64,000 nucleotides of DNA from Lytechinus pictus (GCF_037042905.1 NC_087252.1:11780001-11844000); one strand, 5' to 3'. Positions 22,207 to 63,000 are shown, numbered from the stretch's first letter. The notes: generated by a model not told the origin, from the letters alone. Made by a program: numbers and translations.

Positions 22207-25128
22207 TTATTCGTCTAGTTCAGAGGATGTCTCTGTAAAGTTGGTGACAACACCACACTCTCCCTTCTTTACTAGTGTATTGTTTGGACAGTATTCCAGA
22301 TTGAACGTCTGTTGATACCTTCCATCGAACCCTGGTTGCCAGGCAACGAAGAGAGTTGAAGATGTCGTCTGGTTTTGGTCGATGAAGAGCAGGGGAAGTC
22401 GATCTGAGATATCTATAATGTACAAAGGGGTTGGGGGGGGGGGGGTAATTGATAACTATATCATTATATATCACAATTGCCTTTTCTTTTTTGAGTAAAT
22501 ATATAAAAAAAATCAGCTGAGGGAACATTGTGGATGACAAGGCAACGGCATAAAGTAATGAGGTGATACACTAATGAGTGGATACTCACAAGAAAAGTTC
22601 AAAGTCGCAGTGGCATTACCAAGAACGGTAATCACGTGACATTCATATTTCCCGGAATGCATTCGTTGAACATCATTGATGATAAGGCGACTAGTTGAAA
22701 CCGTTTTCCTCTGAACCCTGTCAAGGACAACAAACTGACCTGTGCTGTTGATTATGATCAGCTGGTTGTGGTACCAAGAAAAGTCAATGCTTTTTGGGTT
22801 TGCATCTGATGTACATTCGAATTCGACACTGGTCATGTTGGAAACCGCCTCATCGTTATCAAGGAGTCGAAGAGAAATGATTGGTGGATCTGTGTTGTAA
22901 ATATAAAAGAGTTAGACAGAAATTAAAGGCATATAAAACGTATGAGCTTAACATCATGACGCTTTTAAAGATCAAAGTATGTCAGTAAAATCAAGATAGC
23001 AAAGGCGGGAGCGTGATACTTCTAGATTGATGTGTTTAGAATTCATGAACAATTTGTAAAATTTTTGATTGCCAAACTGTTGCATTTAGGTCTTTTAATC
23101 TATGGGGGTTTTAAAGCCTAATTGAACGAATACATACTCGTATATTGCATTAGATGATCCTTTGCCGTCAAATAAAAACAATAGTATCAATTTTCAGGGT
23201 AGTGAACAGGTTATTTCTCACGTGTAACTTACATACGATATTGAGGACCCTGGTATCGTTCTGCGAAGAAACAACGGGAGCCGCCGACGGTTGGACTACT
23301 TGACAGATAAGCTCTTTCCCATGGTCATATATTGATGGTGTGTAAATAAGAGTACTGGTAGCCTTCCATCGTCCATTCTCATTCCTTTCCGTCCGAATAG
23401 ATGAATTCATCGTGAGGTTTCTTGATTCCACGTACCAATAGATGACTGGAGATGGGTATCCATTGTTTGAAGTACAGTTTATTTTGGTTTCTTCACCAGC
23501 TCTCAGATTGTTGAGCATAATTTTTGGAGTGTCAGGTTGTTCTTTATGCGTTTGTAAAAACAAAAACAAAAACATACATTTGCCAAGTATTAGGGAGGCT
23601 AAACATAAATTATTAGATGTGGGGAACCGTGTATTTATTAATCTCTTAAGAGAAACAAATGTCTAATCAACAAAGACTAAATTTTCAACATGACTCGGAT
23701 ACTTCAATCGCTATCACCTGACAGCGGAACCACTACCGGACAACTCTCTGTGATGAAGCCCATATCTGGCAAATGACAGGTTGTTCCGGAACCTCATTGG
23801 GGCCAAGGCGTCCTCTGGAAAGATGTCTTCTAATTTATATACAATATCCGTATGAGTTGTACAGTTACAGGCTAATACTTACCAGGCATTATTTCTTTCA
23901 GGTTCAAGGTATTTGATCTTATGTTGTCCACAATGCATTGATAGTCTCCTCGGTGACTCATACTCCATTTGCTGATTGTCAATTCAGCGGATGATTCGTC
24001 CGTCTGCCATGTCATCTTTCCGGACTGTGAATTCCAATTTTTGCAATCTCCATCGTTGAAGCATATTTTAGATGCTAAACTTGTCACGTTGTCTTTTGTG
24101 ATCAATATATCAGCATGCTGATTCGAAGGCATAAAATTACAGAGGAGATGAATGTCTTCACCAATACTCGGAACTAAAACGTCAGTCGATAGATTAACAC
24201 TGGTAACTGCGTAGCATACTGAAAAAGGCCAAATATTACATGAACTAAATATATTGTACAATCCAAGTCATAAAGGATACTATGAATAAATTTAGATTGG
24301 TTTGTAACATTGTAATCTTCACAATGTTTCCTGGGAAAATGTTACCGAAAAGCAAACCAAGGCACTATATCTGCTTATGCTTTATAAGTTGATACAATTT
24401 TAAGGAAATAACGTACCGAATATTTTGATCGATACAGTTGTGCTCAATAGTTAGTGAATCCCACCCACTCCTTCATTCTGAGTGTTAACTGTAGACGACA
24501 ACAACAACACTACAATGTTCTGCGAACCCAGAACAACAAAGTTTATTACTTGTAATATTTTTCACCTGAATTCAAACGTAAATATGTAAAGCATAACGGA
24601 ATTTAGAACACTTTAAATATTGTTTTTTTTTCCGGTGGGGCTCACTAACTTTTGACCACCACTGTACGTGGGGAGTGGATAATTTTGTTCATGCTATGAT
24701 TACGATATTCTGTTTTTTCACTACTAGTATACTTTAATTTCATTACGAACATGTAATACACAATACTGATTGATAGTACAAGTAATGAAACTACCAGCTA
24801 CGCAATTGAGAGGGGAAATTGCAATTGCCAACGGAGAATCAGAGCACTGGCGCTAAATTCAAAATATTTATTTGAACTAGACATAATGAATGTCTTTGTT
24901 GAAAAGAGAAAGCCTGTTAGAAAATTTTTTATATATTCCATAAGGTAACATTACAAACAATACGCCCATTCATGTGTATCAGTTAAAATCTAGTTGCCTG
25001 ACACCACAAACCGATGAATAAGCAGGATGAAAATTCAACTCTTTTTAAGATGTTCAAAAGTCATTTACTTTTAGCTTACCTTCCTTCGTTAACAGAAGAT
25101 CAAACCATATCAAAATTACAGCTGCCAT
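22207..25128 (-). CDS. Cassette C8: leader + divergent V + C + D + two-thirds-length FN3 stub
   Basis: Leader 25128-25080 (MAAVILIWFDLLLTKE), V 24218-23883, C 23541-23233, D 22889-22590, FN3 stub 22412-22207 (...TSSTLFVAWQPGFDGRYQQTFNLEYC...SELDE*). Confidence 0.8.
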
Positions 25129-26693
25129 TTGTAGAAGAGAAATGTTATACGAAAACGGTTACAATCATCTTGCATCGAGTGCTTTTTATTCCAGTTCAAG
25201 AAGGAATGAACGATTAATTCACAGAGCAATGAAGGGCATGGCAGATGACGAGATTCTTATAGTGGAATGAATTGAAAAAAAAATCCAAAATCGAAAGTAC
25301 GGAGAGAGAGATAAGTTTCACCTTATTCAATGTTAAACATGACTTCATCTTGCTCTATTGTGAGGCCTGCTTTTGATGCGTTGTTTATAAACGGACACGC
25401 GCGGTTTAGATCTTAAGTACGGGGACAACAGAACGATGTGCGTTTAATAGAAAGTGCTCAGTGTGGGTATAGAATATGGCGTCACGTGTCCAAATAAGAG
25501 TACAATTTCAAGACTACACATTTCTTTAATATAATGAGTGAATGGACATTTGTATTTTGCAGGATGATGGAAGCTCTAAATTATCTTTTAATGATCCCAT
25601 TTGGTCGATGGTATTCATATTCCATACGAGGTTAATACAGTGCTCTGAAATTTAACGTGCCGTAATCTGAAGTCAGAGATGTTCTTAGGTCCATCTGATA
25701 CGCTGGATAACAAACAAATTTTTGAGTTTGTCAACCCATTACCCCGCATATATTGAAACTTATTCGTGCAATTCAGATTTTATTAATTAATTGCTTTGCA
25801 TAAGCCCTAATATATAAGTGCTACAAATTTTCGGTAAGCCCCCCCCCCCCACCCCCTCTTGTCACCATCCATCCAATATGCTTATCCATTTCTTTTACGT
25901 CTCCTTTCCGAACTTGTAATTCAATGGCCATTGAAGATAAGTGACAAGGATGGAATTTTAAGAGTTGAATGTAATACAGATCTTGGGAATGTTTTTGAAT
26001 TTATGGACCATTAGCAACTTTAACAGAATATCATTGCAACATGTTCAAGTAATTACAATATTGATATTATTAAAAAAAAGCAAATGATAAACTATGATAA
26101 AGGTTTAATTACATTTCAAATGAGCAATAAAGTCGGAAACATGAATACTGAAATTACCAATTGTGCTCAATAAGATAAAACATTTCTATATATACTATAA
26201 AAATAGTATTATCTGTTTACGATCTTTCATTTTAAAAGAATAACATGTAGCTCACGAGTCGGTCTTCTTTGAGAGTGTGTTTTAGACAGAATTAATTTCA
26301 GATAGCTTCCAGTAGTTTGCGAACTGTCAAATTAATTCATTTATTTGGTCAACCATTTCATCTTGCCATTTTAATATCGATATTTGGAGCGGGAACGACA
26401 GAGGAAAAATTATAATACAGATAACGTGATGGTTTCCCGCGGTCAGAAAGGTGCAATTACGAAAATGCAACTCGTTCTCGTACTACTAATGTAATGTTTA
26501 GGTCTCAAGGGAGACGTCTTTGATATTCATACTTTCACAAGGCATGACTTCATTCTGCATAGTTGGGGCAAACTATGGAGTTCTATAGGTACATATATGA
26601 TTATCTATCAGCTTTAAATGACTCTTTTAGATTAAAATAAATTTAATAGACAACGACAGGCAAACAAAGTATAATGTAAATGAAAGATTTTAC

Positions 26694-30753: not shown

Positions 30754-33700
30754 TTAGCTCTGCTTATGTTTTAATATTGAAAGTATTATTTCGTATAGGC
30801 CATGTAGGTTGAATGCAGATACGGACTCAGTTTCTCGACAGTGCCAATCTAAAATCTTGTATGACAAATTAAAATTATCCCTAATTTTCTGTGCAACGAA
30901 AAGAGTTGAAGACGTCGCCTGGTTCTGGTCGACGATGAGCCGAGAAGCTGAATCAGGGATGGCTGGATTTTAGCGTAGGGATGACGAGACATGCACGATG
31001 AAACTATTTATTATTTATTCATACTAATTTATACCATTAATTTAGGAATCAAATATGTTTGCAAATATCATGCCACAAATATTGAGTAAATTGAATGTTA
31101 TTATTTGGGAGCTGTCAATTACTTTCAATATGACGATAATAACAAAATAGACATGATAGAGAAACTTAACCAAAGAGCCACATTCACATAAATCGAAGAA
31201 AGATTATTGTTCTCCTTACCGTAAGATGTTGAGTTTAAGACCGTAGTTCCCGATCCATATGTTGAATTAGCTATACATTTGAAGTCACAAGAATCTTCAG
31301 AAAGGGGGTATTTAATTGCTAGTTCGCTTGAAGTCACTGTTTCACAATGTGCTACAGTTTTGTAGAGCGTCATATTTCGGCGACTACATAGCTCTGTTCC
31401 ATTACAGAGCCACTGAAAGATGAAAGCAGGAGGGTTGGCATCTGATGTACATTTCAATACAAAAGCAACATGTACACCACTCAAGGTAAGTCGTCGAGAA
31501 GTAATGGATACAATCGGGCTGTCTAGAAAAGAGGAATACATTTTGAAAATAATGAGTGGCTTTATACTGTATTTCGAGCATTGCTGTAGATGATAAGATA
31601 CCAATGTACAATTCTTAAAGGTGAATAACATTAAAGACTCTAACTAATCGTCATCCATCCAACCTCTTTTAAAAGTGAAAACCCCCACAATATTATTGAA
31701 TACAAATGCAACAGACATTAAAACATGAAATATAAGCAATCCAGGTCAGTGCTCCTTTATGTTTTTTTTCCGGATATAAATACTCACACGATATGTTTAG
31801 AACCATGCTATCATTCACTGAGCGACCCAAGGTTTTTCCAGGTTGAACTGCTTTGCAAAGAAGACTTTTCCCATGGCCAAACCTCCTTGGTATGAAGATC
31901 AGGGTGCTTACAGTATCGTATCGATCAGCAGAATTCAATGATGACTTAAGCGATGAATTATCTGTCAGGTTTTTTGATCCAATGTACCAATGAATGAGAG
32001 GAACTGGGTAGCCATTATATGTTCTGCATGTTACATTTGTTTCCATACCATCGTGCAGATCCATCGGAATGGTGATATTAGTGTCATCTGGTAGGCCTTG
32101 GGAAAATAAAGAACAATTGTTTAATGTCAAGCATTATGGGAAATGATACCGTTTAGGTGCAGAACATATTTATCACCTAACTTTTCAATTGTCGGCATGA
32201 AAAATGAAGTTCTTATATGCTCAAATGAGGTAAATAGACGGCATTGATTTGATAACCCTCTTGGTAGATTTGATTTTGTAGTTCATGAATTTCATATATT
32301 AAGTAGACACACTCTGCTTCTTAGTTGATAACTTTGACGAGAAGCGTCCATGTATCATTGCAACGTCAAATAATATATACGTTTTATATGAGTGTGATAC
32401 TCACCGTAAACCCTTAATTTTGAAAGATTTTGGCCAACAACCTCGCTGTCCATGAATGCATAACATTGAATGTACTTTCCGTGGTCAGTTTTCGTCGGGC
32501 GTATTTTGATGGTAGTCTCAGTGTCGAACAACTTCTCATCGAAGAGATTTGGAGTCTTTGAATAATTTTTTATTGGCATAATGCCAGAGTCACCCAGAAG
32601 ATCCAATGCTAGCTCAACTGCTGGGAAAGATCCAATACTTTTACACGTGATCGATGTCGGTGAATCTTCTTGGACGTACATCTCGTATGACTGAGACTGG
32701 TTAATTCCAGTTGGGAAGAGTAACACATTCATAGGCCAAACTACAAAATAGAAAAAAGGAAAGTTGACTGAAAGAGAAGAAAAAGGCTGACGAGGAAGAG
32801 AAGTGATAGGTGTCGGGGGGAGGAGGGGTTGCTATTTTTATAAATCATATATATCGAGTAGAAACGATTATGTTGGGACCAAATTCCACATGAGGTGAAG
32901 TAGTGATCGATCATTTGAAATAGGCAGAAAAGCGTTAGTAACAGAAATATATATATATGTCTACAATGACTTCAATTCATGTAAAGCCAAAATTCAGTGT
33001 CTTGTTGACCTAGATAATGGTAATACTTTTACCTTGTCAAAAACTAACATAATAACTTGATGCGGGTGATCATATAGAACCTTACATCTCTAATAGTCTT
33101 CCTAATAATATACCTTGAAAATTCAGATTGATTGAGCACTGAAGGTCATCTTGTATTTCTGGATGTGATGCGATGCAGCTAAGAATCTTTCCTTGGTCGT
33201 TCCTGGAGGGTATGATTGTAAACGCTTTCTGAGAGATGTAAGATCCGTCTCGAATGACATCCGCCTGATCCTGAGCAATAACGGTTATATCATCTGGTAT
33301 ACGCCATTCCAGTTTCGCTGGAGGCTTTGCCCGCGATGCTTCGCATGTGATGTTATATGGCCCTCCAGCTATTACTGGTACATGCGTGACAGAAAAGTTG
33401 TTACAGAAGAATCTGTTTCCTTTTCCAGTAGTAATAAATATTCTATTTGGTGGAGCTGATGATAAAAAAGAAAAGATGAATTGATTGTTTATCGCTTTGT
33501 CTTACAGTCTTTTGAAAATTTCTCGTCTCCCTACGAAATTTTCCGCGATATAAAGTGATTAAGATTTATGTATATATTTTTTTAGATTTCCTTGACAAAA
33601 GTTCCAGGGTAAATGTTTTGTTTTCAGTTTATAAGAAAAGGGAAAGCATTATGTCGGTACGATATATTTCTACCGTTTATTTAAGCTGTGCCCATATATA

Positions 33701-34910
33701 TTAATGTATCGTAATGTCTGTCGTTTTACAAACCATTCCACAAAGATATTCATATATATACTACGATCCTGGAGAAACAATGCTAAAGAAATGTATGTCG
33801 TGTAACATATAGAGCTTACATGCCACCTAAGCAATAAGAAATATACCTGGTGGTGACGCTCTCACTTGCCTGCTGGATGTTGGATATTTTATGAAACCAA
33901 TTTTCTCCTAGATGAGACCATGGATTTGTTTTTAATGTTTAATAAGGCATAATTTAACACAACATGCCACAGATCAATTTTATTCTGAGATATTTCGAAC
34001 ACCGTCATTTTCTATTTATGGATCTTATGTTTTAATAAATATACCTGGTGTTAACGGTCTCACTTGTATGCTTGATGATCCTGGTTGCTCGTTTCCATCT
34101 GTGCTGCTTAATGAACAATGGTACGCACCGCCATCATATTCATTAAGACGTTTAATTGTCAACTTTCCGGTAGAATTATCGGCTATAAAGCTGAATTTTG
34201 TTGTTGATGGAACATAATGCCATGTGCAGGGCAAATTCCTCCGACAGTAATGAGAGGCCAATAGGTGGTTGTTGCCCTTGGTCCACTCCACTCGCCGATA
34301 TCTGGTTTCAGGTGTGAAGGAACAGACCAGAGTAAATTCTTCCCCGATGACCGGAAGCGAGTTGTCTGTCTGGATAGACACTTGAAATGCATAGTTTCCT
34401 GTATGGGTTAAATTAAACATGATTTAAGGGGAATATCCACTGAGATGGTTAACGCAAGATGTGTTTTGTAATTTCTGCCCTTTGAAGGATTGAGGGAAAT
34501 CATAACAAGGCGACACAAATCTCGGACTCATTCAACATACCGTCGTCACCAGTGTTGGTTATACTGATGGTGTATATACTGATACTGTCTTTTCTAGAAA
34601 TAATTATATCGCAGCTATTCATCCACGTTAATATTGATGAATGCAACGTCTAGATATCTGAAATCGAAACGATTGGGCAATGAGATCTTTTATATATTCT
34701 CCATGCTGAGACAGTCTGTCACTTGTTTGAGATAGTTGAAATAATGCAACTTCAATTCCAATTATAATTCCCTCAAAACACAACAATATCATATTTTCAA
34801 AATTAAACTAGACACATACATACACATTTATATATAATATATTTACCAATTGTTGAAGTGACAATACCAAGAAACACGAAGATGATTTCTCCACGAATAC
34901 CCAGCATCAT
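30754..34910 (-). CDS. Cassette C6: leader + V + A + B + C + D + decayed FN3 stub
   Basis: Leader 34910-34847 (MMLGIRGEIIFVFLGIVTSTI), V 34398-34045, A 33455-33114, B 32740-32405, C 32096-31788, D 31522-31220, FN3 stub 30962-30754. Confidence 0.87.
33847..33880 (-). pseudogene. Orphan V-exon 3' end (G strand + donor)
   Basis: AGCAGGCAAGTGAGAGCGTCACCACCAG|gtatat resembles the C6 V end AGCATACAAGTGAGACCGTTAACACCAG|gtatat 200 bp upstream. Confidence 0.6.
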
Positions 34911-35144
34911 TCAGCATTTACAGCTATCGACACAAAATGGCAAGTACATGCAGTGAATGTTGGGCTGATTAAGAGTGACGTAAAAGATACATATAACGGG
35001 ATAAAATATGTTAACCGACATTTAGCTTTGGAGTGTCGGTCTGTGATTTATTACATTACAGTCCCTCTTGTATCCAATAGCGAATAGGTTTCAAAACCCT
35101 GACATTAATTACTCGACAGATTAGTTGGCAAGGTAAATTTGTTA

Positions 35145-37616: not shown

Positions 37617-38418
37617 GGCCGTGTTTATGCTTCCACTTTTCAGGCCAGAATCAGCGTTTCCAAACGTGATTAGTCCAAAACACGGTTGCGTCCATGCTTA
37701 CTTTCATTTAAACGCTGTTTCAAAACGCCGATCGTAAACTCACAAAAAGGTGCGTTTGTAAACGTCGTTTGACCAGAATCAGGCTTTCTGGGGAAGTATA
37801 AACAGAACCACGATCGTAAACGTGTTTCCGGTGAGATGAAAATCCGCGGGCAAACACAGTCGCATTGCTCCATGGTCATCTCATCTCCCTTGTTTTGCAG
37901 GTGTAGTAATATATATTACTAGTATTACTCTTCCAATTATTTTGTCATCGCGATGAACGTTGAGGGATTTACACACAAAAAACCTGGAACATGGGTTATA
38001 ATTGACATCGCCAGATGCCCCAGTAGCATAAACAAATATATATTTTATTATTTTGTATACTTGATATTCGTTATGTTTTCTTACTATTATCCTCAACATG
38101 GTGGAAATTATATGGTTATATCAAGAAGCTCCATGCAATGTCTAAAATATCGGAAATTGTTCGATGTTTATATAACAGTCGACGTACCTTCCCCATAAAA
38201 CACTCGGAAAAAAAAAACTTTCGAAAAAGGGCGCACCCAATTTGACCTCGCTTTCCTGCTCAACGAAATTTACGATGCGAAGCCAGCTGGAGATCGTGAT
38301 TTCGCCTTTGAAAAGTTAAGCATAAACAGCACTCCCAGAACCACGTTTACGATCTGCGTTTTGAATCGACGTTTGAAAACGCTGATTCTGTCCTCGCAAT
38401 GGAAGCATAAACACACCC
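37617..38418. mobile_element. PIF/Harbinger-like MITE, 3-bp TSD (TTT)
   Basis: TTT|GGCCGTGTTTATGCTTCCA...TGGAAGCATAAACACACCC|TTT. Empty site visible in paralogs near 45730 and 50920. Confidence 0.8.
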
Positions 38419-41400
38419 TTTGTTCTTTGATAACGAATATGGTTGAAGATGTCGTCTGGTTCTGGTCGACGATGAGCCGAGATGGTGGATCCGGGTTGGC
38501 TGGATATTATCATAAGGGATAATAATACATGTATCATGGAACGATTTAGTCTCCATTTACTATTTTATACTATTAGATTCTTAATACTTTATACGTATTC
38601 GAATGGTTACATGACACAGAAAGTGCGTCGAGTGAATAATCTTTGAAATAATGATGATAAAAATACATGACACAGTATCATTACTTTAATACAAAAAGCA
38701 GATGCATATGGACACTAAACAAAGGGAAGTGTTCTCCTTACCGTAAATTGTTGAGTTTAAGACTGCAATTCCAGAGCCATAAGTTGAGCTAGCGATGCAT
38801 TCGAACTCACAAGGATCTTCTGACCTGGAGTTTCCAATTGCAAGTTCGCTTGAAGTCACTGTTTCACCCTGTACTACAGTTTTGTAGAGCGTCATGTTAT
38901 TTCGGTGAACAAATAGCTCCGTTCCATTACAGAGCCACTGGAAGGTGAAAGCAGGAGGGTTGGCATCTGATGTACATTTCAATACAAAACCAGCATGTAC
39001 CCCATTCAGGTTTACTCGTCGAAGGGAAATTGATGCAACCGGGGCGTCTAGAACATATAGAGCAAATCGAACAAAGTGACAGTCGCCTTCTTGATCGTTT
39101 GGTCGACTATTTGATATTTACCAAAAAATAAAGACATGGATATTTTAGAGGTTCATTAACAGTTCTATGGCTGATAGTCATCAATCCACCCTTTCTTAAG
39201 TGAAAACAAAATAACTATCAAATAAATATAAAGAAAAGATAGGAATCTCATTATATATTCAATTCAGGTCTATACTACCTTAACATCTGAAAGGTATACT
39301 CACATGATATATTCAGAACCATGCTATCATTCCCTGAGCGACCCAGGATAGTTTCAGGTTGAACTACTTGGCAAATAAGACGTTTTCCATTGTCAAACCT
39401 CTTTGGTAGGAACGTCAGAGTGCTTAAAGCATCATATCGACCAGCTCTATTCAATGAAGAACTCAGCAATGAATAGTCTGTTAGGTTTCTTGATCCAATG
39501 TACCAGTGAATGAGAGGAGCTGGGTAACCATTCGAAGTTCTGCAAGAAATGTTGGCTTCCTTACCGTCGTATAGATCCACTGGGTTAGTCACTACAACAT
39601 CTGGTGACCCTTTGAAAAATGTGTTTTAGATGATAACATTGCTTGTGAAATTGTGCCATTCTTAATTTAAACGTGATTTCCAGCATTTTGTGACAAAAAT
39701 AATCATATTCGATTAACAGACAAAGTCAAATAGATGTCATTTATTCGATGATAACCTCGTGGATACATACAATTTCGTAGTATTGTTTATCAGCGGCCTA
39801 GTATTATTCTCGTTAAGGCTTTTTTTAGAAACTCATTTTGAACGTTCAAGCATCACCAAAATTCTTAAGAACACTGAGATGACGATAATGAAAGAGAATA
39901 CTTACCATAGACCATCAATCTAACCCACACTAGACCGACAACCGTGTCGTCCATTGATGCATAACATTGGATGTACTTTCCATGGAACGTATTCGTCGGG
40001 TATATATTGATGGTAGTCTCAGTGTCGAACAAATTGTTATGAACTACAACACTGGTAGTCGTTGAAAGGTTTGTAATAGGAATAATATCAGTGTCACTAA
40101 TGAGATCCAATGATAGTTCAGTTGCTGGGAAGGATCCAATACTTTTACAAGTGATTGATGTCAGTGAATCTTCTTGAAGGTAAAGGACTGTTGATTGAGA
40201 CTCGTTACGTCCCGTTAAAAAGAGCAGCACACTGGTAGGAAAAACTGAAACGAAATGAAGATATATAAATTGACCATGTAAATCGTACCAAATGTCGAGA
40301 TCAAAATGCGTAGTTTAAAGATGAAAATAGTCATGCTAATTTATTTAAAAACATTTTTCAAAGTACGCAGTATAAAATTGATTGAAGACTTTGGCTTTAA
40401 CTATCAGAGACTCATAAAAACCTATGTTTCATATACCTGATACATACCATGAACAATCAGATTAATTGAGCAGTGGAGGTCATTCTGGAGTTCTGGGTGT
40501 GATGCGATGCAGCTGAGAGTCTTTCCTTGGTCATTCTTGGAGGGAGTAATTGTTATCACTTTCCTTGACTTGTAAAAGTTGGCTTGAATGACATCAGACT
40601 GATCTTGAATTACGGTGGCCATACCTTCTGCTACACGCCATTCCAGTACTGCTGGAGGCCTAGCCCACAATGCTTCACATGTGATGCTATGTTTTTTTCC
40701 GGCCGTTACAGAAATGTTGTTGAAGCAGTAAAGAGTCTTTTTTTCAGCTTTGATAAAGATTCTATTTGGCGAATCTGGTGTAATAGAGAAGAATGAATAC
40801 CTTTTGCGATAGCCATTTTCTTTCTTGAAATGCAATCGCTCAGAAAAATATGAATCTACAGATTGAGATCACTGTTTAGCAATAAAATATCAGTTTTTGC
40901 CCATGAACTGTAGTCTCTTATTGAAGATTGTTTGTAACAAACGTATTAAACATACCGAATATAAACACATTTATTGATGCCCATTTTGTTTCCGAAGTCG
41001 GGGACTTTTTTTCCAACCGAAATTCTATGGATAAACTTGCATACCTTAAAAACATTATCTAAACTATACAAAAAATCTTCTTGAGTTGTTTTACTCTCAA
41101 GAAGGTATTGACGAAAATGTTTCCATTCATTGGATATTGTAGAAATCAATGAATTAATTCAAAGAAAATTACAATTAAATTTGCATTTTTGTAAAAAAGT
41201 TGTATGTGAGAGAAATTGTTTTGTTCATCAAATAAATGTTTAACACTGATGATCCCATTTTTAAGCCAAAATTGTTTATATATAACTTTCCCATCTACGT
41301 CGATCAATGAGTTATTCCGTATTACTTGATTCTTTATATTTAAATCAGAAAAAAATAGGAAAGAATGTTACACGACCCCACGCAATTAAAATTCCTCGAA

Positions 41401-42879
41401 TGAATTGATTTTTATTTGTAATATTTTGTAATATTTATTTGTAATATTTCAAACAATTCTCCCAAAAGGTGACCAAGTTGTATTCACAAAAAACATTTCA
41501 ATTTTCTTTTATTTTCAGTGCTCATAACCCATGCAATTTTACGCCAGATACTACCGAAGGTAAATGTAACATTTTCGATCCACCTTGACTATAGTCTCCA
41601 ATAATTGTCAGACGATTGATTTTATTTAGTTTTTCATTCCAAAAAGAGGAGTAAATGAAAATTCCTTATTCTATTTTATTTGTTATTTACCTGGTGGTAA
41701 TGGACTCAGTTGTTGGACAGCTGAGCCCAGAATCTCAATACCAATTGTACTCATTAATGAGCAGTGGTAATCGCCGCTATCGTTCCTGTCAAGCTCTTTG
41801 ATTGTCAAATTTCCGCTGGAATTATCGGCTAGAAACCTGAATTTTGATGGAGATGGAATAGAATACCGTGAGCAGAGCTGATTCATCCAACATGAATGAG
41901 AGACCAAATGGACGTTGCTGCCCTTGGTCCACTCCACTCGCCGATATCTGGTTTCAGGTGTGAAGGAACAGACCAGAGTGAAATCTTCGCCGATGACTGG
42001 AAGAGAATTTGTCTGGATGGACACTTCGAATGCATGGTGTCCTGTGTGGTTGGAGAAGAATTGGATTTTAGGGAAGAATGGTTATTATGAAATACGTTTT
42101 CAACGTTATCTGAAGGATATCTTAACAGAACGATTTATGTAAATATATTTATGAAACTTCGGATTTACTTAACAAACTGTCGTCGGCGGTGATGGTGGTT
42201 TTGGTGGGCATTCTGTCTTTCCTAGAAAACAAAAATGTATTGATGTTTATCCACGTTTCTGTTGAGGTGTCGTTGTGTAGTGGTTCAGCCACTTGACTCT
42301 TAAAACAAGGGTCATGGGTTCGACTTCCACCCGACACTATTGTCATTCGGAAAGGCTAGGGTTAGGGCTTGTCACGTTTGTCACTTTCCCGAAATGTGTT
42401 TCCGGTAAGATGTGAACGTCCATGTGATTAGATTAGCACGTTTGCACCGATAAACGATTGTCTGGCTAGGATACTACCCAAGGAGTGGGGATGGTGCACT
42501 TTATGTGTCGAACAGTCATGGATCTTACATGACCGGGGTAAAATCAATTAGAAACCAAAGTATGAAGCGCTATATGAATGTAACTATTATTATTATCATT
42601 ATTATTGTTATTATTATTATTAACACATTGTCTCGATAATTTTTGAAAACTGAAACGATACGATAATGAGATCATTTATATTCCTCATGCTGAAAGAGTA
42701 TCTCAATTGTATGCATCTTACATTAAAGTCTAAAACGTACAACATTTCAAATCTTTATGATATCAAATATGCATGTTCCCAATTGAACTTCTTTAAAAGA
42801 GTAAACAAAATTTACCTATTGTTGAAGTGATTACACCAAGAAACACTGAAATAATTTCTCCACGAATGACCAGCATCAT
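38270..42879 (-). CDS. Cassette C5: leader + V + A + B + C + D + FN3 stub reading into a MITE
   Basis: Leader 42879-42816 (MMLVIRGEIISVFLGVITSTI), V 42041-41691, A 40774-40448, B 40244-39906, C 39609-39304, D 39047-38742, FN3 stub from 38499 with in-frame stop at 38272-38270. Confidence 0.87.
42264..42622 (+). mobile_element. tRNA-derived SINE in the C5 leader-V intron
   Basis: A-box TGTGTAGTGG, B-box GGTTCGACTTCC, (TAT)n tail. Absent from the paralogous C6 intron. Confidence 0.75.
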
Positions 42880-43130
42880 CCAGCAATTTAAGTTATGGAC
42901 ACAACAATGACAATTATATGCAGTATACGACGGCTGACTACGAGTGCAAGCCCAGAAAGTGATAATGGGATAAAAATTGTAAACCTACATACATGTATTG
43001 CTTAGGAGCATCGGACTAGGCATTATGAAGGTGTAGCCCCTCTTATATGTAATAGCGAATCGGTTTCATAACTTCGGGATAAATTTATCAAATGACGGTT
43101 TACTATGTAGGTATCATGCTAAATTTGTTA

Positions 43131-45757: not shown

Positions 45758-48700
45758 TTAGGATGTTGTCTGGTTCTGGTCGATGATGAGCCGAGAAAGT
45801 GGATCAGGGATGGCTGGATTTTATTGTAAGGGGATAATAGATGCAGAATGAAACTCGCCCCGATTTACTAATATTTACCATTGTGAATAATCGATTATGT
45901 ATGAATAATTGCAGAAGCTGGTGACGCAGAATAGTCGAGCAAATATTTGTGGAAGCGGGCACTAAATCATCGCTTTGCTACAATTATTGGCTGTGAAACA
46001 CAAAGTAAACACGACTCACAACATGGGGATTGAATAGAAACGAAATTTTCTTCTTACCGTATGACGTCGAGTTTAAGACTGCAGTTCCTGAGCCATATGC
46101 GGAAATACCGATGCATCTGAACTCACAATGATCTGCCGAACGGGGCTCTCCAATTGTTAGTTCGGTTGAAGTCACAGTATCACCTTCTATCACAGTGTCG
46201 TTGAACGTTATATTGTCGCAGTCTTGACGTTTTGTACAGTTACAGAGCCACTGAATTGTGGACGCAGGAGGATTGGCATCTGACGTACATTTCAATACAA
46301 AACCGACATGTACCCCTGTCTCGACAAGTCGTCGAGAAGTAATGGATACAATCGGGCCGTCTAGCAAACAGAAAATAATTTTTAGAAATAATGAGTGATT
46401 TTGAAATGCATTTCGAGCAGGGAAATATCATTAACATACTCTCTATCTAGTTGTCATCCACCCACTGTGTTTTTTTAAAGAAAAAGGAAAAACAATATTA
46501 AATCCAAATTCAACTTTCATTAAGACATAATTATAAACAATTCAGGTCTATGCTCCTTTATGTTTTTTTTCCTGTTATAAATACTCACACGATATGTTTA
46601 GAACCATGCTGTCGTTCACTGAACGAAACAAGAATGTTTCAGGTTGAACTGCCTGACAGAGAAGACGTTTTCCATGATCAAACATATTTGGTACGAAGAT
46701 CAGAGTGCTTATAGAATCATATCGATTAGCAGAATTCAATGAAGATTTTAGCGATGAATTATCTGTCAGGTTTCTTGACCCAATGTACCAATGAATGAGA
46801 GGAGCTGGGTATCCATTAGATGTTCTGCATGTTACATTTGTTTCCATACCATCGTGGAGATCGACTGGAATGGTAATATTAGCGTCATCTGGTAGGCCTT
46901 GCATGAGAAGAGAAAGGACAATTATTTCGAGTGAAGCAATATGAATAATAATACTGCTTTGGTGCAGAACATACTTATTATGCAGCGTTTCATAAATCAG
47001 CATGACAAACTAAAGTTCTTTGTTCAGATGAAGTAAAATAGATGGCATTGAGTTAATAACACTGTTCGTAGTTTCAGTTATGAGGTTGTTGAATTTTAGA
47101 AGTTTAGTAGACACACTCTGCTTGCTTAGCTGATTACTTTGACGAGGAGTATCCATGTGTCAATGCACTGTCGGGTGATGTAATTTATAGGAATATTGAC
47201 ATAATATATTATATTTGATTATGATACTCACCGTAAACTACTAATTTGGCAGATTCCACGCCAACAAGTTCTTTTTCCATGAATGCAAAACATTGAATGT
47301 ATTTTCCATGGTCAGTTTTCGTCGGATGTATTTGGATCGTAGTCTCAGTGTCGAACAAATTGTCATCCAAATGACTTGAAGTCTTTGAAGAGTGTGTGAT
47401 GGGAATAATGTCAGAGCCATAAAGAAGAGACACTGGTAGTTCCACTGCTGGGAAGGATCCAATACTTTTACACGTGATTGATGTCGGTAAGTTTTCCTGA
47501 ACGTATATGTCAGTTGACTGAGACTGGGTAATTCCCGTTGTAAAGAGTAACACATTCTTAGGCCAAACTACAAAATAGAAAAAAAAAAACAAGGTGACGG
47601 AAAGCGAAATAGCAAGAAAGCGAGAAAGAGAAAGTATATCGACTAGACATGATTATGATGGGACCAAATATTGCATGAGGCGAAGAAGTGATCGATCATT
47701 TTAACGATGCAAACAAAAAACCCAACAAAGTAACAGAAAAATATATAAATGACGTTAATTCATGTCAAGGCAGTAATCTGCGTCTTGTTGACCTGAAAAG
47801 TGGCAACCTTTGACTCGGGTGAGGACACAGAACGTTACAGGTTAACGTTAAATCTACGTAATAAATACCTTGGATATTCAGGATGGTTGAGCATTGAAGG
47901 TCACTTTCTACTTCAGAATGTGACGCGATGCAGCTAAGAATTTTTCCTTGGTCATTCCTGGAAGGTGTTATCGTTAAAGGTCTCCGAGAGGTGTAAAAGT
48001 TGTCTTGTACGAAATGAGACTGATGTTGAAGAGCAACATCAGTGCCACCTGGTATTCTCCATTTCAGTCCTGCGGGAGGTCTTGCTTGCGTTGCTTCACA
48101 GTTAATGGCATATGGTTCTCCAGCTTTTACCGTTATAGATAAGTTGTTAAAGTAGTAACAACTTGCTCTTCTGTCATTGATAATGATCCTATTTGGTGGA
48201 TCTTGTGACAGAAAAAAATGATAAAAGAGGAAAAGGTATTTTTTCTTACTTACTACCGTGTTTAATTTCTCAACTTCATATAATCTACCCCAGTGCTATC
48301 GGCGGTGGAAGGGGGGGGGGGGTCTTTCAGCTATTTTCATTCCGTGCAGATCTTGCTGCCTGAGGCACAGTACATTAAAATTGTTTAAAACTACAATAAA
48401 AAGTATTACTAAAAATAATTATGAGGGAAATTATTATACTCAATAGAGAAGGGAAAAAAGTAATCTCGTGTGTTTAAGTTAGTTTCAGTGCCCCCTCTTT
48501 CTCCTCATCTGCTTGAAATGAAAAAAAGAGAGTATCTGGTGTGTATCGAATACCCAAAGACACAGACACACACACATACACAATAAGAAGAAAATGATTA
48601 AGAAGTGCCGTATACATAGTACAGTTACATTGTTATTATGAGCGGCATGTTCTATTTTTGGGATGTAACAGAAATCACATGTGTATGTGCATTCATTTAA

Positions 48701-49500
48701 AGGATCAACATACATCGGGATAATGTAATAACCTGCTGGCTAGCTGATCCTGAAATCTCGTTCCCATTTGTCCTGCTTAATGAACAACGGTATTCGCCGT
48801 CATCATTCTCGTCAAGCTTTTTGATTGTTAAATTTCCACCGGCATGATCGGCGAGAAAGCTGTATTTCGATGCGGACCGAACATAATGCATACAGGGGTG
48901 GTTCATCCTACAAGAATGAGAGGCCACTTGGATATTTCCATCATTTGTCCAAATCACTTGCCGATATCTGGTTTCAGGTGTGAAGGAACAGACCAGAGTG
49001 AAATCTTCACCGATTACTGGAAGAGCGTCTGTCTGGATAGACACTTCAAATGCATGGTGTCCTGTAAGGTTGAAGAAAGATGTGATTTTAGGGAACAAAC
49101 TCGTGATATGTTTTACATGGGATACGTTTTTATTGTTATTTGCCATTTGAACAGTGGACGCAAATCTCTGATTTTTTTTAAGAAACCGTCGTCGCCAGTG
49201 ATGGTAATATTGATGGTTAGTCAGTCTTTTCTAGAAATAATTGTATTGCCATTCATGTCAAGATTTTGGAAATTGAAACGATCAGAAACTTAGATCATTT
49301 ATATATTCTCCATGCTGAGACGGCATCAAAGTGGTATGCACGTTTTTTTTTCTAGACCTACAACTTAATAACATTTATCTTCAAGTTCCCAATTGAACTA
49401 CTTTAGAATAGCAAAAAAAGTATACATAAACTTTACCTATTGTTGAAGTGATAATACCAAGAAACACGAACATATTTTCTCCACGAATAACCAACATCAT
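45758..49500 (-). CDS. Cassette C4: leader + V + A + B + C + D + FN3 stub
   Basis: Leader 49500-49437 (MMLVIRGENMFVFLGIITSTI), V 49061-48714, A 48201-47869, B 47567-47232, C 46897-46589, D 46360-46058, FN3 stub 45813-45758 (AIPDPLSRLIIDQNQTTS*). All phase 1 and open. Confidence 0.87.
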
Positions 49501-49748
49501 CCAGCATGTTAAGATATCAACACAATGGCAAGTAGTGTTCAGTACACGGCAGCTGACTACGAGTACAAGCAAAGTGAATGACAACGGGAGAAAATATGTA
49601 AGCTTACAAACATGATGAATATATATTTACTGTATTTGAGTATCGGTCGGTGATGTATGACGTGGTAGGTCCTACTGGTATCTATTACCGAATCAGTTTC
49701 ATAACTATGAAAGAAACAATGTAGCTAGGTATTAAGCTACATTCTTTG

Positions 49749-50944: not shown

Positions 50945-53900
50945 TTAAGATGTCGTCTGGTTCTGGTCGACGATGAGCCAAGAAGATGGATCCGGAATAG
51001 CTAAATTTTTAAGGTAGAGAGTTGGGAAAGAATATTTTGCAAACAGAGTTATGGTTACGTACATTACTTGTAGTAATTAATCTTGAAATAATGATTTAAA
51101 GCGGACCTAACTCATTGCATTAAGTATTCCAAGGTGATACTTCACGGAATCCAGAATATGCGTTTTGACTTAGATTATCAATTTCTGAGCTCAATGCTGT
51201 GTAAAGAAGTCCTTTATGGTACATGTATATTAAACTTAAGCAATATAGGAATCTAACTGTAGTTCTTTGTATATGTCATCTACGGCATTACCCTGATGGC
51301 ACAATCTCACGCACATGGATTTAAAAATGCATGATTCAGTAAACATAGAAAAAAAATTAAACCTCTAATACATGTATGAAAAATTATGGTTGAGGGTGTC
51401 TTTAGTGCTTTTAAGATTGTAAACCGTATACATTCAAGAACTGGTCGACCGGTTCGAGAGTTTGATGTAAATGAAATAATTTCAAGATATTACAGATCGT
51501 GTATTCAAGTGTAAAACACCTCTGTAAGTAGTCGCTGAATGCAAAACTAGACATGTACCATTTGCAGTCTTACGAATATTTGTATAACCCTTTGTCACAT
51601 GCTGAATTGTTTTGTCAAAGTTTTGACAGTTTGATAATAATATCAATATATTTGATAACATACTCACATAATACGTTTAGAACCAAGCTGTCATTTATTG
51701 ACTGCATTCGGTGTGTTTGAGATTGAAATGCCCGGCAAATCAGAAGTTTCCCATGGTCGAACCTCGATGGTATAAGTGACAGAATACTCGTAGTGTCATA
51801 GCGATGAGCTGGATTCCCTGAAGTACTCAGCGATGAATTATCTGTCACGTTCATTGATCCGATGTACCAATGAATGAGAGGAGTGGGGTATCCATTAAAA
51901 GCCCTGCAAATTACGTTGGTTTCCAGGCCGTCGTGTAGTTCCTCCGATATTGTCATTTTAATATAATCTGGTAGGCCTTTTCAGACAAAACAAAATATAA
52001 AACCTTTATGAGAATAATACAATTTTACTTGTATGTAATTCATAAATACTTCAATGTCATTTATACTTATCGGCAGGGGGAAGCCTAGATATAACATTAA
52101 TTTCTGATTGAACAAATTAACTATGTTAAAATGACATGGATTGATAACTACGTTGTGGAAGTCGTTTTAATAATATAGGATAGTAGTAGTAACATCTTTC
52201 AGACTTTCTCATTCCAACATTCGTGGTATTACTACGAATATTGCAAGCATAATATGATGGAATTTATCACTTACCAATGACCCATAAAGTGGCTGTAAGT
52301 ATGTCAACAAAGGCCCCGTCCAGAGATATATAGCATTGAATTAAATTCCCATGGTCTGTCTTCTCCGGGTGTATTGTGATGCTACTTTCGGTGTCAAATA
52401 AAGTATCATCCATAATATTACGCGTCTTTGAAAGGTTTCCGTTTATGGGGATACTGGTATCGTTACCAATTAGTGTCCACAATAGTTCAGTCACTGGGAA
52501 TGAGGCAATTGTCTTACAAGTGATTGAAGTCGGTGAATCTTCTTGCACGTTTAGGACTTTTTGCAGCGATTCAATTCCACTTCCAGTTAGAAAGATCATC
52601 ATTCTAGAAGGATGAAGTAGATTTAAAGAGGGAGATAACACTTCTGACTGATAACCAGCAAACTCATTATTATTTCAACATTCATCATTTCATATGGCTG
52701 TATTTTTGTTTTACGCAAAAAAGAAACATCAGAAAATAATACAACATTACTGTGAAGCCTTCATGACCTTCACTCCTGTCTTTGTGTGACGGACGTGTCC
52801 AAGAATGCCCCGCCATATCGATCACACCAATGACCCTGCTACAAATCAAGTGAGCATGGAGAGTTTTTTTTTTTTATCTAATCATGACCGCCGATATTCC
52901 TATTTGATTATTAAATCTTGAACAATCTTGGATAAATTTTATCAATGACAAACTTTAAGCTTGTCCCATACGCCAGCTAGACAAAGCAAAGACTAATGTT
53001 GAAATCTAGATTCTGCTCGTATTTTTTTCATGCATAGCATAGTTTTAATTTCCATATTTTTCTCCGAATGTTAGGCATATACGTTGTGTGATCACACAAG
53101 TCCGAGGTTTATGGCGTTATTATGCGCATGGTGCACGTACTTTTACAAAGTGACCTAAACAGATTCTGCGGAACAAGAGACTCATACAATGAAAGCGTAG
53201 GGGCACCTATTGTTTGGCAGACAAAAGGTGCCCCTCCACTTTCTTTGTCCGAGCCTGATGTTCCACCGTCTCTGGACCTAACCCCCCATGTTCCTCATTA
53301 GATACATAGTATATGAATGCCTACCTGCGATTCACTTTAAAATGATCAATCAAATTGGAAATAATTTTTTTGTTTGTGTTTTAAAAATGATTAACTTTAT
53401 GCTTTAAATTTTTTGGAATTACTGTTATCGTTTACTTCAACGCGCAAGGTTTTGAGCGCCGGTAAAACATTAACATTATGATCTTGATAAATATAAAAAT
53501 CGTGTTAAGGAGATGGGACGAAGTAAAGGACAGTTCGTCAGTGAAGTTATTTGAAATTAAGTATTTATTATAAGACATTGTTACACCGTGACAGTCATTT
53601 TACGAATTATTCAATTGAAAACGTATAACACATTACCATAAGATTTTTTTTTTCAATCCCGACCCATAATATTCATTGTTAAAAGCCCATGTAATGTCCG
53701 AACATACCTGCTATTAATGGCATCACTTGCTTGCTTGCTGATCCAACACTCACTGTCCCGTACGTGCTGCGTAATAAGCAGTGGTATATATATCCATCAT
53801 TTTCGTGAAGCCTTTTAATTGTTAAATTTCCGGTGGAAGTATCGGCTAAAAAGCTGAATTTCGATGACGAACGAATGTCATAAGAGCAGTAATCGTTCTT

Positions 53901-54542: not shown

Positions 54543-54776
54543 TGTTCAGCCAGTGACACAAACAGTTCCGAGAAATCTTTGAAGTAAATTGCTTGATTAA
54601 GAATAAAACAAGCAATGAGAGATGGAACAATTGTGAAACTAAGAGCCCGTGCATTCTGGAGTATTGGCTGGTGATTAATGACAATGTAGTCATTGTAGTA
54701 TCTAATAGCAAATCGATGTCACGAGCATGAAAGAAATTCATTAGAATGAAAAGGCATATACCATGCCATATTGGTT

Positions 54777-54794
54777 TATAAGAGATGGCGCTCT
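54777..54794 (+). promoter_or_regulatory. CTCF-like CGCT motif upstream of C3
   Basis: tataagAGATGGCGCTct, about 240 bp upstream of the ATG, inside a block conserved in C3-C6. Confidence 0.5.
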
Positions 54795-59490: not shown

Positions 59491-60017
59491 TCTTCGTCCC
59501 GTATTTTAAGTCCAGATTTATTTTCCGATTGTATTAAAACAATATACCACCTATTCAGCTCAATATGTGAAATGAGCAGGAAGCGGTGTTTGCTTTCGAT
59601 CAGCTATAAGCTGCCAAGGTATGGATTGACCTTTTTCAGTCACAGCGAAAATGAAAGCATTTATGCTTCAAGTAAAAGGTAGAATGTGGGATAATTGATT
59701 GCTCCTGCAATTAATCATTTATTTGAGTTCTATTCAAGGTTATTATCTGTAAAGCTTTAATAGGCAAATGCAATAAAGGTACGAATCAACTAATTCTGGC
59801 AAGAGGGCGAATAATTGTTTTTCATTCGATACAATGAGAGCCCTTGTATCAATTGTTTTCCAAATAAGTTTACTTTGTCGTGTATTATCATTAGGAATGT
59901 CCAATGAAAATGATAGCAAAATAATTTTAATTGTAAAACAATTGAAATGGATTGAATTTTTTTTTTTTTTATTGATAAATCAAACATTTGTGCACCCTTA
60001 ACCGGTCTTAATAAATG

Positions 60018-63000
60018 CTACCAGGCAACAAAGAGAGTTGAAGATGTCGTCTGATTTTGGTCTACGAAGAGCCATGATGGTTGATTTGGGATGGCTGAAA
60101 TAAAAGAGGAATATTTTTTTCTCAGGAAAATGGTTGGGATTATGTTGTCATTGAGACAAGTGACAAAATCATATAGGCCTTAAAACACACCCCAATATTG
60201 GGACCAAAGCTAAAAAGAATTCGTTGTCAATGCATGTCGAAATATACATAAATACCTGTGTAATTCTGAAGTGAAAATTATAGTTGCACAATTCTGCAAA
60301 TCTTCATGAAATTTCATTTCACAATTTATTACTAAGGCTTTAACTATTAATACTCACATGATATGTTCAACACCATGCTTGCATTCATTGAGAGTTCCAC
60401 GAGTGTTGTAGGCTGAACTGCCTGACAAAGAAGATGTTTTCTATGGTCAAAGCTATTTGGTATGAAGATCAGAGTGCTTTCAGCATCATATCGATAAGTG
60501 CTGTTGATGGATGTCTTCAGAGTTGAATTGCACGTGATGTTTCTTGACCCGATATACCAGTGGATGAGAGGAGCAGGGTATCCATTGAAAGCTGTGCAGG
60601 TTATTTCGGTTCTTATACTGGCTTGAAGATCCTCTGGGACCGTCAGTTTAACATAATCCGGAATGGCTTGAGGTGAACAAAATAAAGTAGTGAAATGTAA
60701 GATAGGTAGAACTTGGTGTAATAATGCATTTGGTCGGTACCGACGAGCATATCCTCAACTATATTTAACGTACAAATGAACCTATGAGCTTAAATGAAAA
60801 AGCCAACGTGGCCTTTGAAATCTCAGCAAAGGAACTAACAAGCTATTAGTTTTGATGATGTTGAAATATTTGGCAAACAAATTATCAGCCTGTTTTGGGT
60901 TTTAGTTTGTGAAGTATACGTTTGCAATGGAAGAACATATTCAAGATACACCGTAACTCACCGTACACCATCAATCTCGCTACCGCTTGATCAACAAACT
61001 TGCCATCAATATATGCGTTGCATTGAATGTTCTGTCCGTGGTCCTTCTTCCCTGGTAGTATTGTGATGGAAGTCTCAGAGTCAACCACATTATCATCTAA
61101 GACAACACTACGAGTCTTTGTGATGTTTAGAATACTAATGTTGCCAGTAGGAAAACACCATTCTAATTCAGTCGCTGGGAATGATCCAATCGCTTTACAA
61201 GTGACTGAAGTGGTTGACTCTTCTTTAATGTATAGACTTGTAGACGAAGTTCCATGTTCTTGGTGGCCTTTAGCGCGAGGAACCAACAGCAGCATGCTAG
61301 ATGGTAGAACTACAAGATGAAGACAGCGGATTGACATACGAAACTTATTAAATCACCTAAAATCAACTTAAAGCTTTGAAAAATATTCGAGAAACAGAGA
61401 AAAGACATTGAGATGGTCAGTAGGTTTTGATCACCAAAAAAAGCTTACACTTTACATGCTTATTGTTATTTATATTATACCACCAAGCAAAGGACACAGG
61501 CAGAGGATAGTATGGAATATATAATGACATATTCTTTCCTTCCTAGGTAGTACTTACCATGAACATTAAAATGAACAGATATCTGGAGATTTTTTTGAAG
61601 TTTTGGATGTGATGCAGTGCACTTAAGTATCCTTCCTTGGTCATTCCTAGAAGGTTTGATTGTTACAATTTTTTGGGAGATATATAGGTTGTAGTTGTCT
61701 CGTATGGTATTATTCTGATCACGGGATAAATATATTACATCGTAGGGTATATGCCATTGTAGTACTGCAGGAGGCCTTGCCCAGTATGCTTCACATATAA
61801 TGTTAAGTTGCTGTCCAGCTGTTACTGTCATAGTCGTGTTGTGAAAGTAAGGACGGCTCGATCTTTCGTCAATTATACGAATCCTCAAGGGTGGAGCTGT
61901 TGACAGAAAAAATATAAAAAATACATGTAGGCCTATTTGATTTTGACAGGACTTAATTTGAATGGTCTGAAAATAATGAAAGCTTTTTTTGGAAGGAATA
62001 TAATTGTCTAAATTGTGTCGCCATTCTTAGATTAATGACACTAGGGAAATTTATTGTCATTAGCTTAGTATATTCAATTGTCGCCCAGGAAGAACAGTGC
62101 CAAATCTATCGGAGGGGGTTTAGGACGCAGTGCATTGCAGCTCATCGTCTTTGGGCCGCACCAACAGTACTGGTCAAACCCCCCTTGTAAAAAGCTAGAT
62201 CCGCCACTGCAATCCGACCACAAATTCTCCTCTCAATTTTAATATCCCAATATCGTTGTTGCAATTTACTAACCTGGTGAAAATGGCGTTACATGTATGC
62301 TCCCGCTTCCAGGTTTCTCATTTCCGTATGTGCTGCTTAATGAGCAAGTATAATTATCGCTATCATTTTCATCAAGATTTCTAATGGTTAAATTTCCACT
62401 CGAATTATCAGCCGACAAGCTGAACTTCTCTGGGTCAAGATAGGTTGACACAATGCAATCCCTATACGGTAAACATAAATGAGAGGCCACCTCGACAGTG
62501 CCACCCTTGGTCCAGACCACTCGCCGATTTCTTGATTCCGGTGTGAACCAACAGAACATCGTAAAGTCTTCACCGATGACCGGAAGAGACTTGTCTGTCT
62601 GGATAGACACTTCAAATGCATGGTTTCCTGTATGGATGAGACGTAGGATTCGTTGGAGCAAAATCCACGATAAACATGATATATATGAAGTGATGTAATG
62701 ATAAATACGACCTACCCTCTGGCATAGCCAAATGTAAGGATAGACTGATAGGGCAAGATTGGGCACCCAAGTATTTATATTTACGTGTTGGGTCATGGGG
62801 TTCAAATTTAAATTGTGTGGATTATGCCACTAATAATGGGAAAAGGCTTAAACAACTCTACTCTACAAACCTTCGATAATAACCAAATTAGTGCACAATA
62901 TGTTTCCATAGCGCTTCTCCGGGTTGGTTATTCTAGGTCCCTCTTCAATAAATTTATTTTGCAACAAGGATAACAGATTTGTATTTCCTTTTAGCACAAC

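Follow-up and report, generated by a model that had tools for sequence, protein, structure and literature searches.

The 64,000-nucleotide (nt) stretch of the sea urchin Lytechinus pictus analysed here (GCF_037042905.1 NC_087252.1:11780001-11844000, hereafter the window; G000:C8:11780001-11844000 in our numbering of the 812-Mb genome) is part of a ~600-kb tandem array of nephrin/SYG-2-like immunoglobulin (Ig) superfamily genes, in which many cassettes of Ig exons are followed by a stub, the 5′ end of a fibronectin type III (FN3) exon. We propose that this stub is an old, inherited and selected remnant of the FN3 exon, likely acting as the short last coding exon of secreted, anchor-less paralogues, and put the probability of this reading at roughly 0.6. 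Two results carry it. In the short stubs the truncated state is inherited and old, and the diverse lesions found there arose later, beyond the constrained part. Within the cassette, no other part evolves as slowly as the first ~57 nt of the stub.

A BLASTN search of the window with the stub of cassette C1 recovered seven copies, starting at 60094, 51000, 45813, 38499, 30962 and 22412 and in the full FN3 exon of cassette C11 ('exon 291'), with E-values from 1e-7 to 1e-21 (Table 1). An AG (or TAG) acceptor followed by ~70 nt of gap-free alignment is common to 7/7 copies; homology ends there except in C8, where it extends for ~200 nt. Cassettes were mapped by tblastn over 264 kb (11.700-11.964 Mb of the same sequence, C8 in our numbering), and this region contains 18 stubs, with one in 16 of the 17 type-1 cassettes; further matches are scattered across 11.70-12.31 Mb. 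The frame of every stub reaches a stop. AATAAA lies less than 100 nt after that stop in C1, C4, C8 and two other stubs, is absent or distant in the rest, and the positions of the poly(A) signals mostly differ between species. BLASTN and a check of the frames placed every element of an initial annotation of the window where it had been described: six stubs with their stops, C1 stopping directly after FVAW with AATAAA about 45 nt on (44 nt as measured), C3 and C4 sharing a TCA>TAA change after QTTS (stops at 50947 and 45760), C5 running into a miniature inverted-repeat transposable element (MITE), C6 decaying after FVA, and C8 cut by repeats with AATAAA overlapping its stop.

Table 1. Features of the stubs, of the full FN3 exon and of the C5 and C6 exons joined in RNA contigs, in window coordinates.
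Feature	Coordinates	Strand	Details
C1 stub	60018..60094	-	acceptor AG 60096-60095; encodes (A)IPNQPSWLFVDQNQTTSSTLFVAW; TAG 60020-60018; AATAAA 44 nt past stop
C3 stub	50945..51000	-	TAG acceptor; ...LIVDQNQTTS, TAA 50947-50945
C4 stub	45758..45813	-	...LIIDQNQTTS, TAA 45760-45758; AATAAA 76 nt past stop
C5 stub, conserved part	38428..38499	-	frame continues to stop at 38272 inside MITE
MITE-like element directly after C5 stub	37621..38414		~795 nt; terminal inverted repeats 37621-37667 and 38369-38414
C6 stub, conserved part	30891..30962	-	FN3 homology lost after ~72 nt; frame continues to stop at 30756
C8 long stub	22207..22412	-	~200 nt of FN3 homology; stop 22209-22207 overlapped by AATAAA
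Two dispersed short repeats abutting C8 stop codon	21800..22205		3227 first-look candidates genome-wide
Full FN3 exon of C11 ('exon 291')	1..291	-	fn3 E = 5.9e-9; runs off window start
C5 first exon	42816..42933	-	acceptor ..GTAGTCAG|CC, same kind as C6; ATG 42879; leader peptide MMLVIRGEIISVFLGVITSTI
C6 first exon	34847..34964	-	acceptor ..TAATCAG|CC 54 nt upstream of own ATG (34910)
C5 Ig4 exon	39304..39609	-	joined to Ig3 and Ig5 in RNA contigs
C5 Ig5 exon	38742..39047	-	donor after 38742 skips stub; RNA joints 39047/39304 and 42884/38742

Past the short stubs no residual FN3 homology rose above shuffled controls, a result that fits a sharp deletion or complete decay alike. No inverted repeats abut the C8 stub, and the two elements there are taken to be repeats from their genome-wide copies. 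The depth of RNA contigs over the C5 MITE ranges from hundreds to more than 1000, with loose ends at 38419. Three further ideas about the stub were discarded. Inspection revealed no glycosylphosphatidylinositol-anchor signal in the tails, the TAA stubs ending in ...QTTS and the other tails having no terminal hydrophobic run; within the window, BLAST gave the stub no meaningful partner in reverse complement of the kind expected from Dscam-like docking/selector pairing; and a small hairpin seen by eye in the stub core was unsupported, as the changes in C4 are not compensatory.

The initial annotation had read the stubs as one exon truncated repeatedly by different lesions. For the short stubs the data contradict this. 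Sequence beyond the end of FN3 homology is shared within subgroups of stubs, namely C3, C4, C5, s37218 and s60740 on the one hand, and C1, s55876 and s241783 together with C0 and s152532 on the other, and the truncated end therefore predates the copying of those cassettes. A tree of the Ig4 exon places all short-stub cassettes, including two from Strongylocentrotus purpuratus, in one clade (support 90/90), with the C8-type long-stub clade as its sister and the full genes and stub-less type-2 cassettes outside. In Lytechinus variegatus, orthologous stubs occur in the same order at two loci (L024 and L026) and include the TAA of the C3/C4 group. This TAA is common to C3, C4, s37218, s60740 and the L. 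variegatus stubs L024:6476 and L026:1042; it arose once. The L. variegatus orthologue of the C6 stub (L024:12652) differs at 4/72 sites, and the sequence that follows the short stubs of S. purpuratus (L025) matches the tail of the L. pictus C0 group. As stubs are present in both Lytechinus species and in S. purpuratus, the cut is older than the Lytechinus-Strongylocentrotus split, which dates back tens of millions of years.

The individual lesions can be ordered against this old cut. The paralogues s55876 and s241783 read CAA where C1 has its TAG, so that the C1 stop is a late change in an already truncated stub. The C5 MITE is located past the stub core, and homology to the C3 spacer resumes behind it. 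Fresh, species-specific erosion of the 3′ end is confined to the long C8 stub, whose FN3 homology ends at ~141 nt in L. variegatus and at ~200 nt in L. pictus, the first 75 nt being identical.

Two stubs of different subgroups stand 200 nt apart after a single Ig5 exon, at 60925 and 60740 of the 264-kb region (window -19075 and -19260). Paired stubs after one Ig5 exon are also found in L. variegatus (L026:862 and 1042). The acceptor AG of s60740 is lost in L. pictus (TAT) and retained in L. variegatus (TAG).

Constraint was measured in six L. variegatus/L. pictus orthologous pairs. Flanking non-coding sequence differed at 277/2324 positions (11.9%), compared with 21/432 (4.9%, p = 4e-6) in the first 72 nt of the stub and 13/342 (3.8%, p = 9e-7) in its first 57 nt; nt 57-72 differed at 8/90 (8.9%). 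Indels are frequent in the flanks and there are none in the stub core. The proportions of non-synonymous (pN) and synonymous (pS) differences were 0.029 and 0.061 in the first 18 codons (pN/pS 0.47), and 0.069 and 0.126 in ~2600 pooled codons of the neighbouring Ig exons (pN/pS 0.54), whose frames are open in L. variegatus as well as in L. pictus and whose pN is below their pS (p = 2e-13). At non-synonymous sites the stub evolves more slowly than the Ig exons (p = 0.012) and than the flanks (p = 1.6e-6). Its synonymous sites change about half as fast as those of the Ig exons, a difference that is not significant (p = 0.12-0.16). Across the 18 L. pictus stubs, variation is lowest at codon position 2 (53 vs 86 and 87), and no stub has a stop or a frame-breaking indel in its first 18 codons. 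In C8 the first 72 nt show 0/72 differences and the FN3-homologous stretch that follows shows 15/83. Comparison of paralogues gave the same picture, the stub being more alike than either flank in most of 16 pairs. Moreover, orthologues keep cassette-specific variants, such as the unusual 5′ end of C8, which is identical in both species, and the similarity of stubs is therefore not due to homogenisation by gene conversion. The pattern fits a translated segment under purifying selection, possibly with an added component at the RNA level. The proposal that selection maintains the Ig exons and not the membrane-proximal part thus stood in its first half. In its second, the rest of FN3, the transmembrane (TM) segment and the tail are gone, while the remnant is the best-kept piece of all.

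These values also bear on the notion that the stubs are neutral debris of young pseudogenes, alike through conversion by intact FN3 exons or through recent duplication. The initial annotation had named absent expression together with an Ig-exon dN/dS near 1 as the marks of young pseudogenes, and the pN/pS found is 0.54, with open frames. The recent pairs s152532/s145688 and C8/s24306 show no excess conservation of the stub, and some cassettes are degraded (C3 has lost two exons and s60740 its AG), but the presence of stubs in L. variegatus and S. purpuratus, a stub divergence of a third to a quarter of that of the flanks, the private variants of orthologues and the conservation of C8 over the first ~72 nt only, though conversion could act on all ~200 nt, leave this notion largely refuted and highly improbable.

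The anchor-less nature of the stub-bearing copies follows from the cassette map. The genes of interest all read from the minus strand. A cassette begins with an ATG leader exon of its own, followed by exons of one domain each, for which the Pfam calls are, in order, V-set, C2-set_2, Ig, C2-set_2 and Ig_3/I-set (E-values 5e-10 for V-set, 4e-7 and 1e-13 for C2-set_2, 5e-13 for I-set); Ig exons and the FN3 exon are both phase 1. Three copies in the 264 kb are full genes, in which an entire FN3 exon and a further extracellular exon come next. The map places a TM exon in 3/3 of them and a cytoplasmic-tail exon in C11 alone. C11 comprises six Ig domains, FN3, the further extracellular exon, a TM segment and a tail with immunoreceptor tyrosine-based inhibitory and switch motifs (ITIM/ITSM). 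Immediately left of the window are its TM and tail exons, which encode the hydrophobic segment IIAIGVIASIGVIIVISLGLMYFYGLM and the motifs LVYISV, TIYASL and YGNY. The remaining copies end after three to five Ig exons, and TM and tail exons are absent from their cassettes. Between any stub and the next cassette there is no TM or tail exon, the nearest being those of C11. Upstream Ig exons are open in the stub cassettes, with some missing altogether: Ig5 in C1, Ig2 and Ig5 in C3, and Ig2 and Ig3 in C8. Querying proteins with the frame of the C5 Ig5 exon gave no match in its length range.

Gene models that end in stubs exist in RefSeq. The 499-residue model P0170 (L. pictus LOC129267202) corresponds to cassette C0, just right of the window (68895-65587), and consists of a leader, V, three Ig exons and the stub s145688, ending in ...TTSSTLFVDSQPVFKTKL. 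At least 10 more RefSeq models from three urchin species end 0-19 residues past the stub motif, among them P0168, P0188 and P0192 in L. pictus, P0184, P0191, P0164, P0177, P0201/P0039 and P0208 in L. variegatus, and P0205 in S. purpuratus. In one subgroup the stop falls at the identical place in both Lytechinus species (...FIIGK). Such models are supporting evidence rather than proof, and may be partly driven by homology. The initial suggestion that stubs may be terminal exons of secreted isoforms agrees with the RefSeq predictions for C0 and the other models, and runs against the RNA evidence for C5, in which the stub is skipped.

This RNA evidence consists of spliced contigs of C5 from two small runs of one study. 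The contigs join Ig3, Ig4 and Ig5 across GT..AG introns. One contig of 449 nt leads from the C5 Ig5 donor (38742) to a first exon and on to a V exon, the V part matching C6 with one mismatch; given the C6 acceptor ..TAATCAG|CC, the length is exactly accounted for as 234+118+97 nt. In these runs the C5 stub is skipped, and in the frame that enters the C6 first exon a TAG follows after 13 codons, giving the tail AQHSLHVLAILCR. The L. variegatus model P0003 behaves similarly, its Ig5 being joined to an exon that ends 4 nt before the ATG of the next gene. In the two cases (C5, and the C6 orthologue in L. variegatus), the stop after stub skipping comes within 13-22 codons.

The joining of C5 Ig5 to the C6 acceptor yields a conjoined, bicistronic-looking transcript in which a stop closely precedes the next ATG. 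In C4 (~49440-49560), C5 and C6 alike, a conserved AG acceptor precedes the ATG of the leader exon by 50-55 nt. In the first exon of C7 (window 30174-29614), the frame entered from the C6 Ig5 donor appears open through the start codon and the V domain in L. pictus, and a C6-C7 fusion protein may exist there; the corresponding frame in L. variegatus stops 4 nt before the ATG.

We read the course of events as follows. An ancestral copy lost the rest of the gene, leaving the 5′ end of the FN3 exon behind as a stub, and every copy of that ancestor inherited it, the loss having taken place before Lytechinus and Strongylocentrotus parted. Purifying selection has kept the acceptor and the first ~57 nt, that is 18-19 codons with the motif ...PDPPSxLIVDQNQTTS and its N-x-T sequon. 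Translated in vivo as the last coding exon, the stub would close the reading frame of anchor-less, presumably secreted proteins. Sequence past the core is free to change, with stops, frameshifts, MITEs and deletions accumulating, and because of this freedom the accumulated lesions look like independent ones. Some cassettes skip the stub, their Ig5 donor joining the acceptor in the first exon of the next cassette, with a stop soon after. By either route the product is a signal peptide, Ig domains and a short tail, with no membrane anchor.

The stub need not descend from a DNA break. The FN3 exon of C11 contains, 90 nt into the exon, an in-frame donor-like site (GATG|GTGGGT at 202/201, in window 195-210). 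A protein in metaclust, P0179, reads ...FVAWQPGYD-A-LQPESYG..., the first ~30 FN3 residues being joined directly to the next extracellular exon; this pattern, as if a donor of the 202/201 type were used, may represent a natural stub-like isoform of full receptors. The stub may, less probably, have descended from such an alternative 90-nt mini-exon, and the nearly common end point of all stubs would then be accounted for. A second metaclust protein, the transcript-like P0163, an odd isoform closest to the S. purpuratus locus L025, has a type-1 V and Ig2 to Ig5, the end of the post-FN3 extracellular exon and an ITIM/ITSM tail, with neither FN3 nor a TM segment, and so links type-1 Ig domains to a receptor tail.

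Several observations weigh against the stub as a last coding exon of secreted proteins. The sole transcript evidence in the window skips the C5 stub and contains no Ig5-to-stub joint, and P0003 also skips a C6-type stub (L024:12652). The aligning of FN3 proteins onto the stub, with extension to the first stop, could produce stub-ending gene models without any RNA, and the RefSeq model of C1 itself (P0183) ends in the intron past Ig3 and leaves the stub unused. Poly(A) signals after stubs are inconsistent, C0 having none within 400 nt. Synonymous sites in the stub also look slow (p = 0.12-0.16, as above), leaving room for a role at the RNA level, and s60740, which has no AG in L. pictus, is still conserved.

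The strongest competitor, which we regard as unlikely but deserving of weight, takes up these points: the stub would be a regulatory pseudo-exon, a decoy or poison exon acting at the RNA level on the choice between terminating and reading through to the next cassette, its peptide being irrelevant. The skipping of the C5 stub with read-through to C6 exon 1, and the same behaviour in P0003, would be expected of such an element, as would the use of the stub as an internal exon in the model P0156. Conservation in the C3/C4 group reaches a few codons beyond the TAA, and divergence at synonymous sites of the stub is roughly half of that in the flanks or at the synonymous sites of Ig exons. However, this synonymous slowing is not significant, whereas the slowing at non-synonymous sites is strong (p = 1.6e-6); codon position 2 is the least variable, and the first 18 codons are free of stops and frame-breaking indels in all stubs. 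Moreover, the introns on either side show no conservation, in contrast to those around typical regulated exons.

A combined reading, in which the stub is a switch exon, appears doubtful. Inclusion would give a single-cassette secreted protein, and skipping would chain the transcript into downstream cassettes and, at some rate, into the FN3-TM-ITIM end of C11; if this were true, one array would yield secreted, multi-cassette and membrane-bound forms from shared transcription. The narrower proposal of the initial annotation, a secreted/membrane switch within one gene, is unsupported, since the cassettes lack membrane exons of their own.

Less probable again is that the locus consists of variable cassettes and one common constant region, as in protocadherins, UGT1A or sDscam, the stubs being skipped and the last Ig spliced to exon 291. 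Many leader-bearing cassettes do lie upstream of one full 3′ region, transcription does read through a cassette boundary, the common phase 1 of Ig and FN3 exons would allow joins in frame, and in P0176, an older model from L. pictus, Ig exons from more than one cassette are strung together ahead of a full FN3. However, P0176 has no match at 90% identity or more in the 264 kb, and the only boundary-crossing junction lands in the next first exon and meets a stop after 13 codons, as P0003 also does. Hence, of the earlier idea of skipping towards a constant region, the skipping was observed in C5 and the destination was not. No junction to exon 291 was seen in the RNA contigs, although contigs cannot prove the absence of a rare junction. 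In addition, the first exons of cassettes have acceptors, unlike protocadherin variable exons, and the whole block including C11 has been duplicated as ordinary genes.

This duplicated block of ~76 kb, with cassettes C7 to C11, lies just left of the window (C8:11700001-11762000, loci L004-L010). Protein identity between the two C11 copies is 96-97% in Ig5, Ig5b and FN3, 83% in Ig4, 65% in Ig2, 50% in Ig3 and 47% in V. Such mosaic divergence suggests that exons were shuffled, that gene conversion took place or that the N-terminal domains diversified strongly.

The array also contains type-2 cassettes, which in the window span 59505-56066 (C2) and 30174-26635 (C7). Here the signal peptide is fused to the V exon and the last Ig is of another kind, and in L. 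pictus there is no stub. They alternate with stub-bearing type-1 cassettes, and the same alternation is found in L. variegatus and S. purpuratus. One type-2 cassette of S. purpuratus retains ~48 codons of FN3 (L025:16520).

A search of the literature found no description of the array, whose genes RefSeq already lists, either uncharacterised or under automatic names. The automatic names (syg-2-like, nephrin-like, kin of IRRE-like) agree with the architecture to some extent. Like nephrin, SYG-2 and Kirre (IRRE) proteins, the array has V-set and CD80-like C2-set Ig domains, a membrane-proximal FN3 and a single TM segment (FN3 and TM taken from C11 only), but it differs from them in being a large tandem expansion particular to its lineage, with ITIM/ITSM-type motifs in the tail and with truncated, presumably secreted members. 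Hydractinia Alr is an invertebrate Ig superfamily family located in a histocompatibility complex (bioRxiv 10.1101/2022.03.04.482883). Mentions of ITIM and of tandem arrangement in that preprint suggest a likeness in tail motifs and in tandem layout, in another phylum and with another domain architecture. As in protocadherins, UGT1A and sDscam, similar variable units, here presumably promoter-proximal, stand in a row upstream of a single set of membrane and tail exons. However, its units are multi-exon genes with their own stops and with acceptors on their first exons, and, because of these stops and of the single cross-unit junction that ends in one, it departs from the feature that defines protocadherin-type loci.

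A closer parallel is provided by vertebrate immune Ig-receptor clusters, which hold anchor-less secreted paralogues such as LILRA3 in the LILR cluster or the soluble members of paired-receptor families. As in those clusters, ITIM-bearing membrane receptors stand beside copies without TM and tail that are predicted to be soluble, the ectodomains evolve fast, and duplication and truncation occurred at the DNA level. In the urchin array, by contrast, dozens of copies have inherited the same remnant of a domain exon and carry it as their presumed last exon, and this remnant is more constrained than the Ig domains.

To our knowledge, sea urchins have no antibodies, and their innate receptor families are greatly expanded. 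The many different lesions after the stubs represent drift downstream of one old inherited cut, and not repeated truncations. As the ~57-nt remnant is the most constrained part and has been retained in S. purpuratus and both Lytechinus species, the C-terminal end that it encodes, or an RNA signal located there, matters. Taken together, an ITIM-type Ig receptor accompanied by dozens of selected, anchor-less relatives is the layout that would be expected of soluble decoys, opsonins or ligand competitors of an inhibitory receptor.

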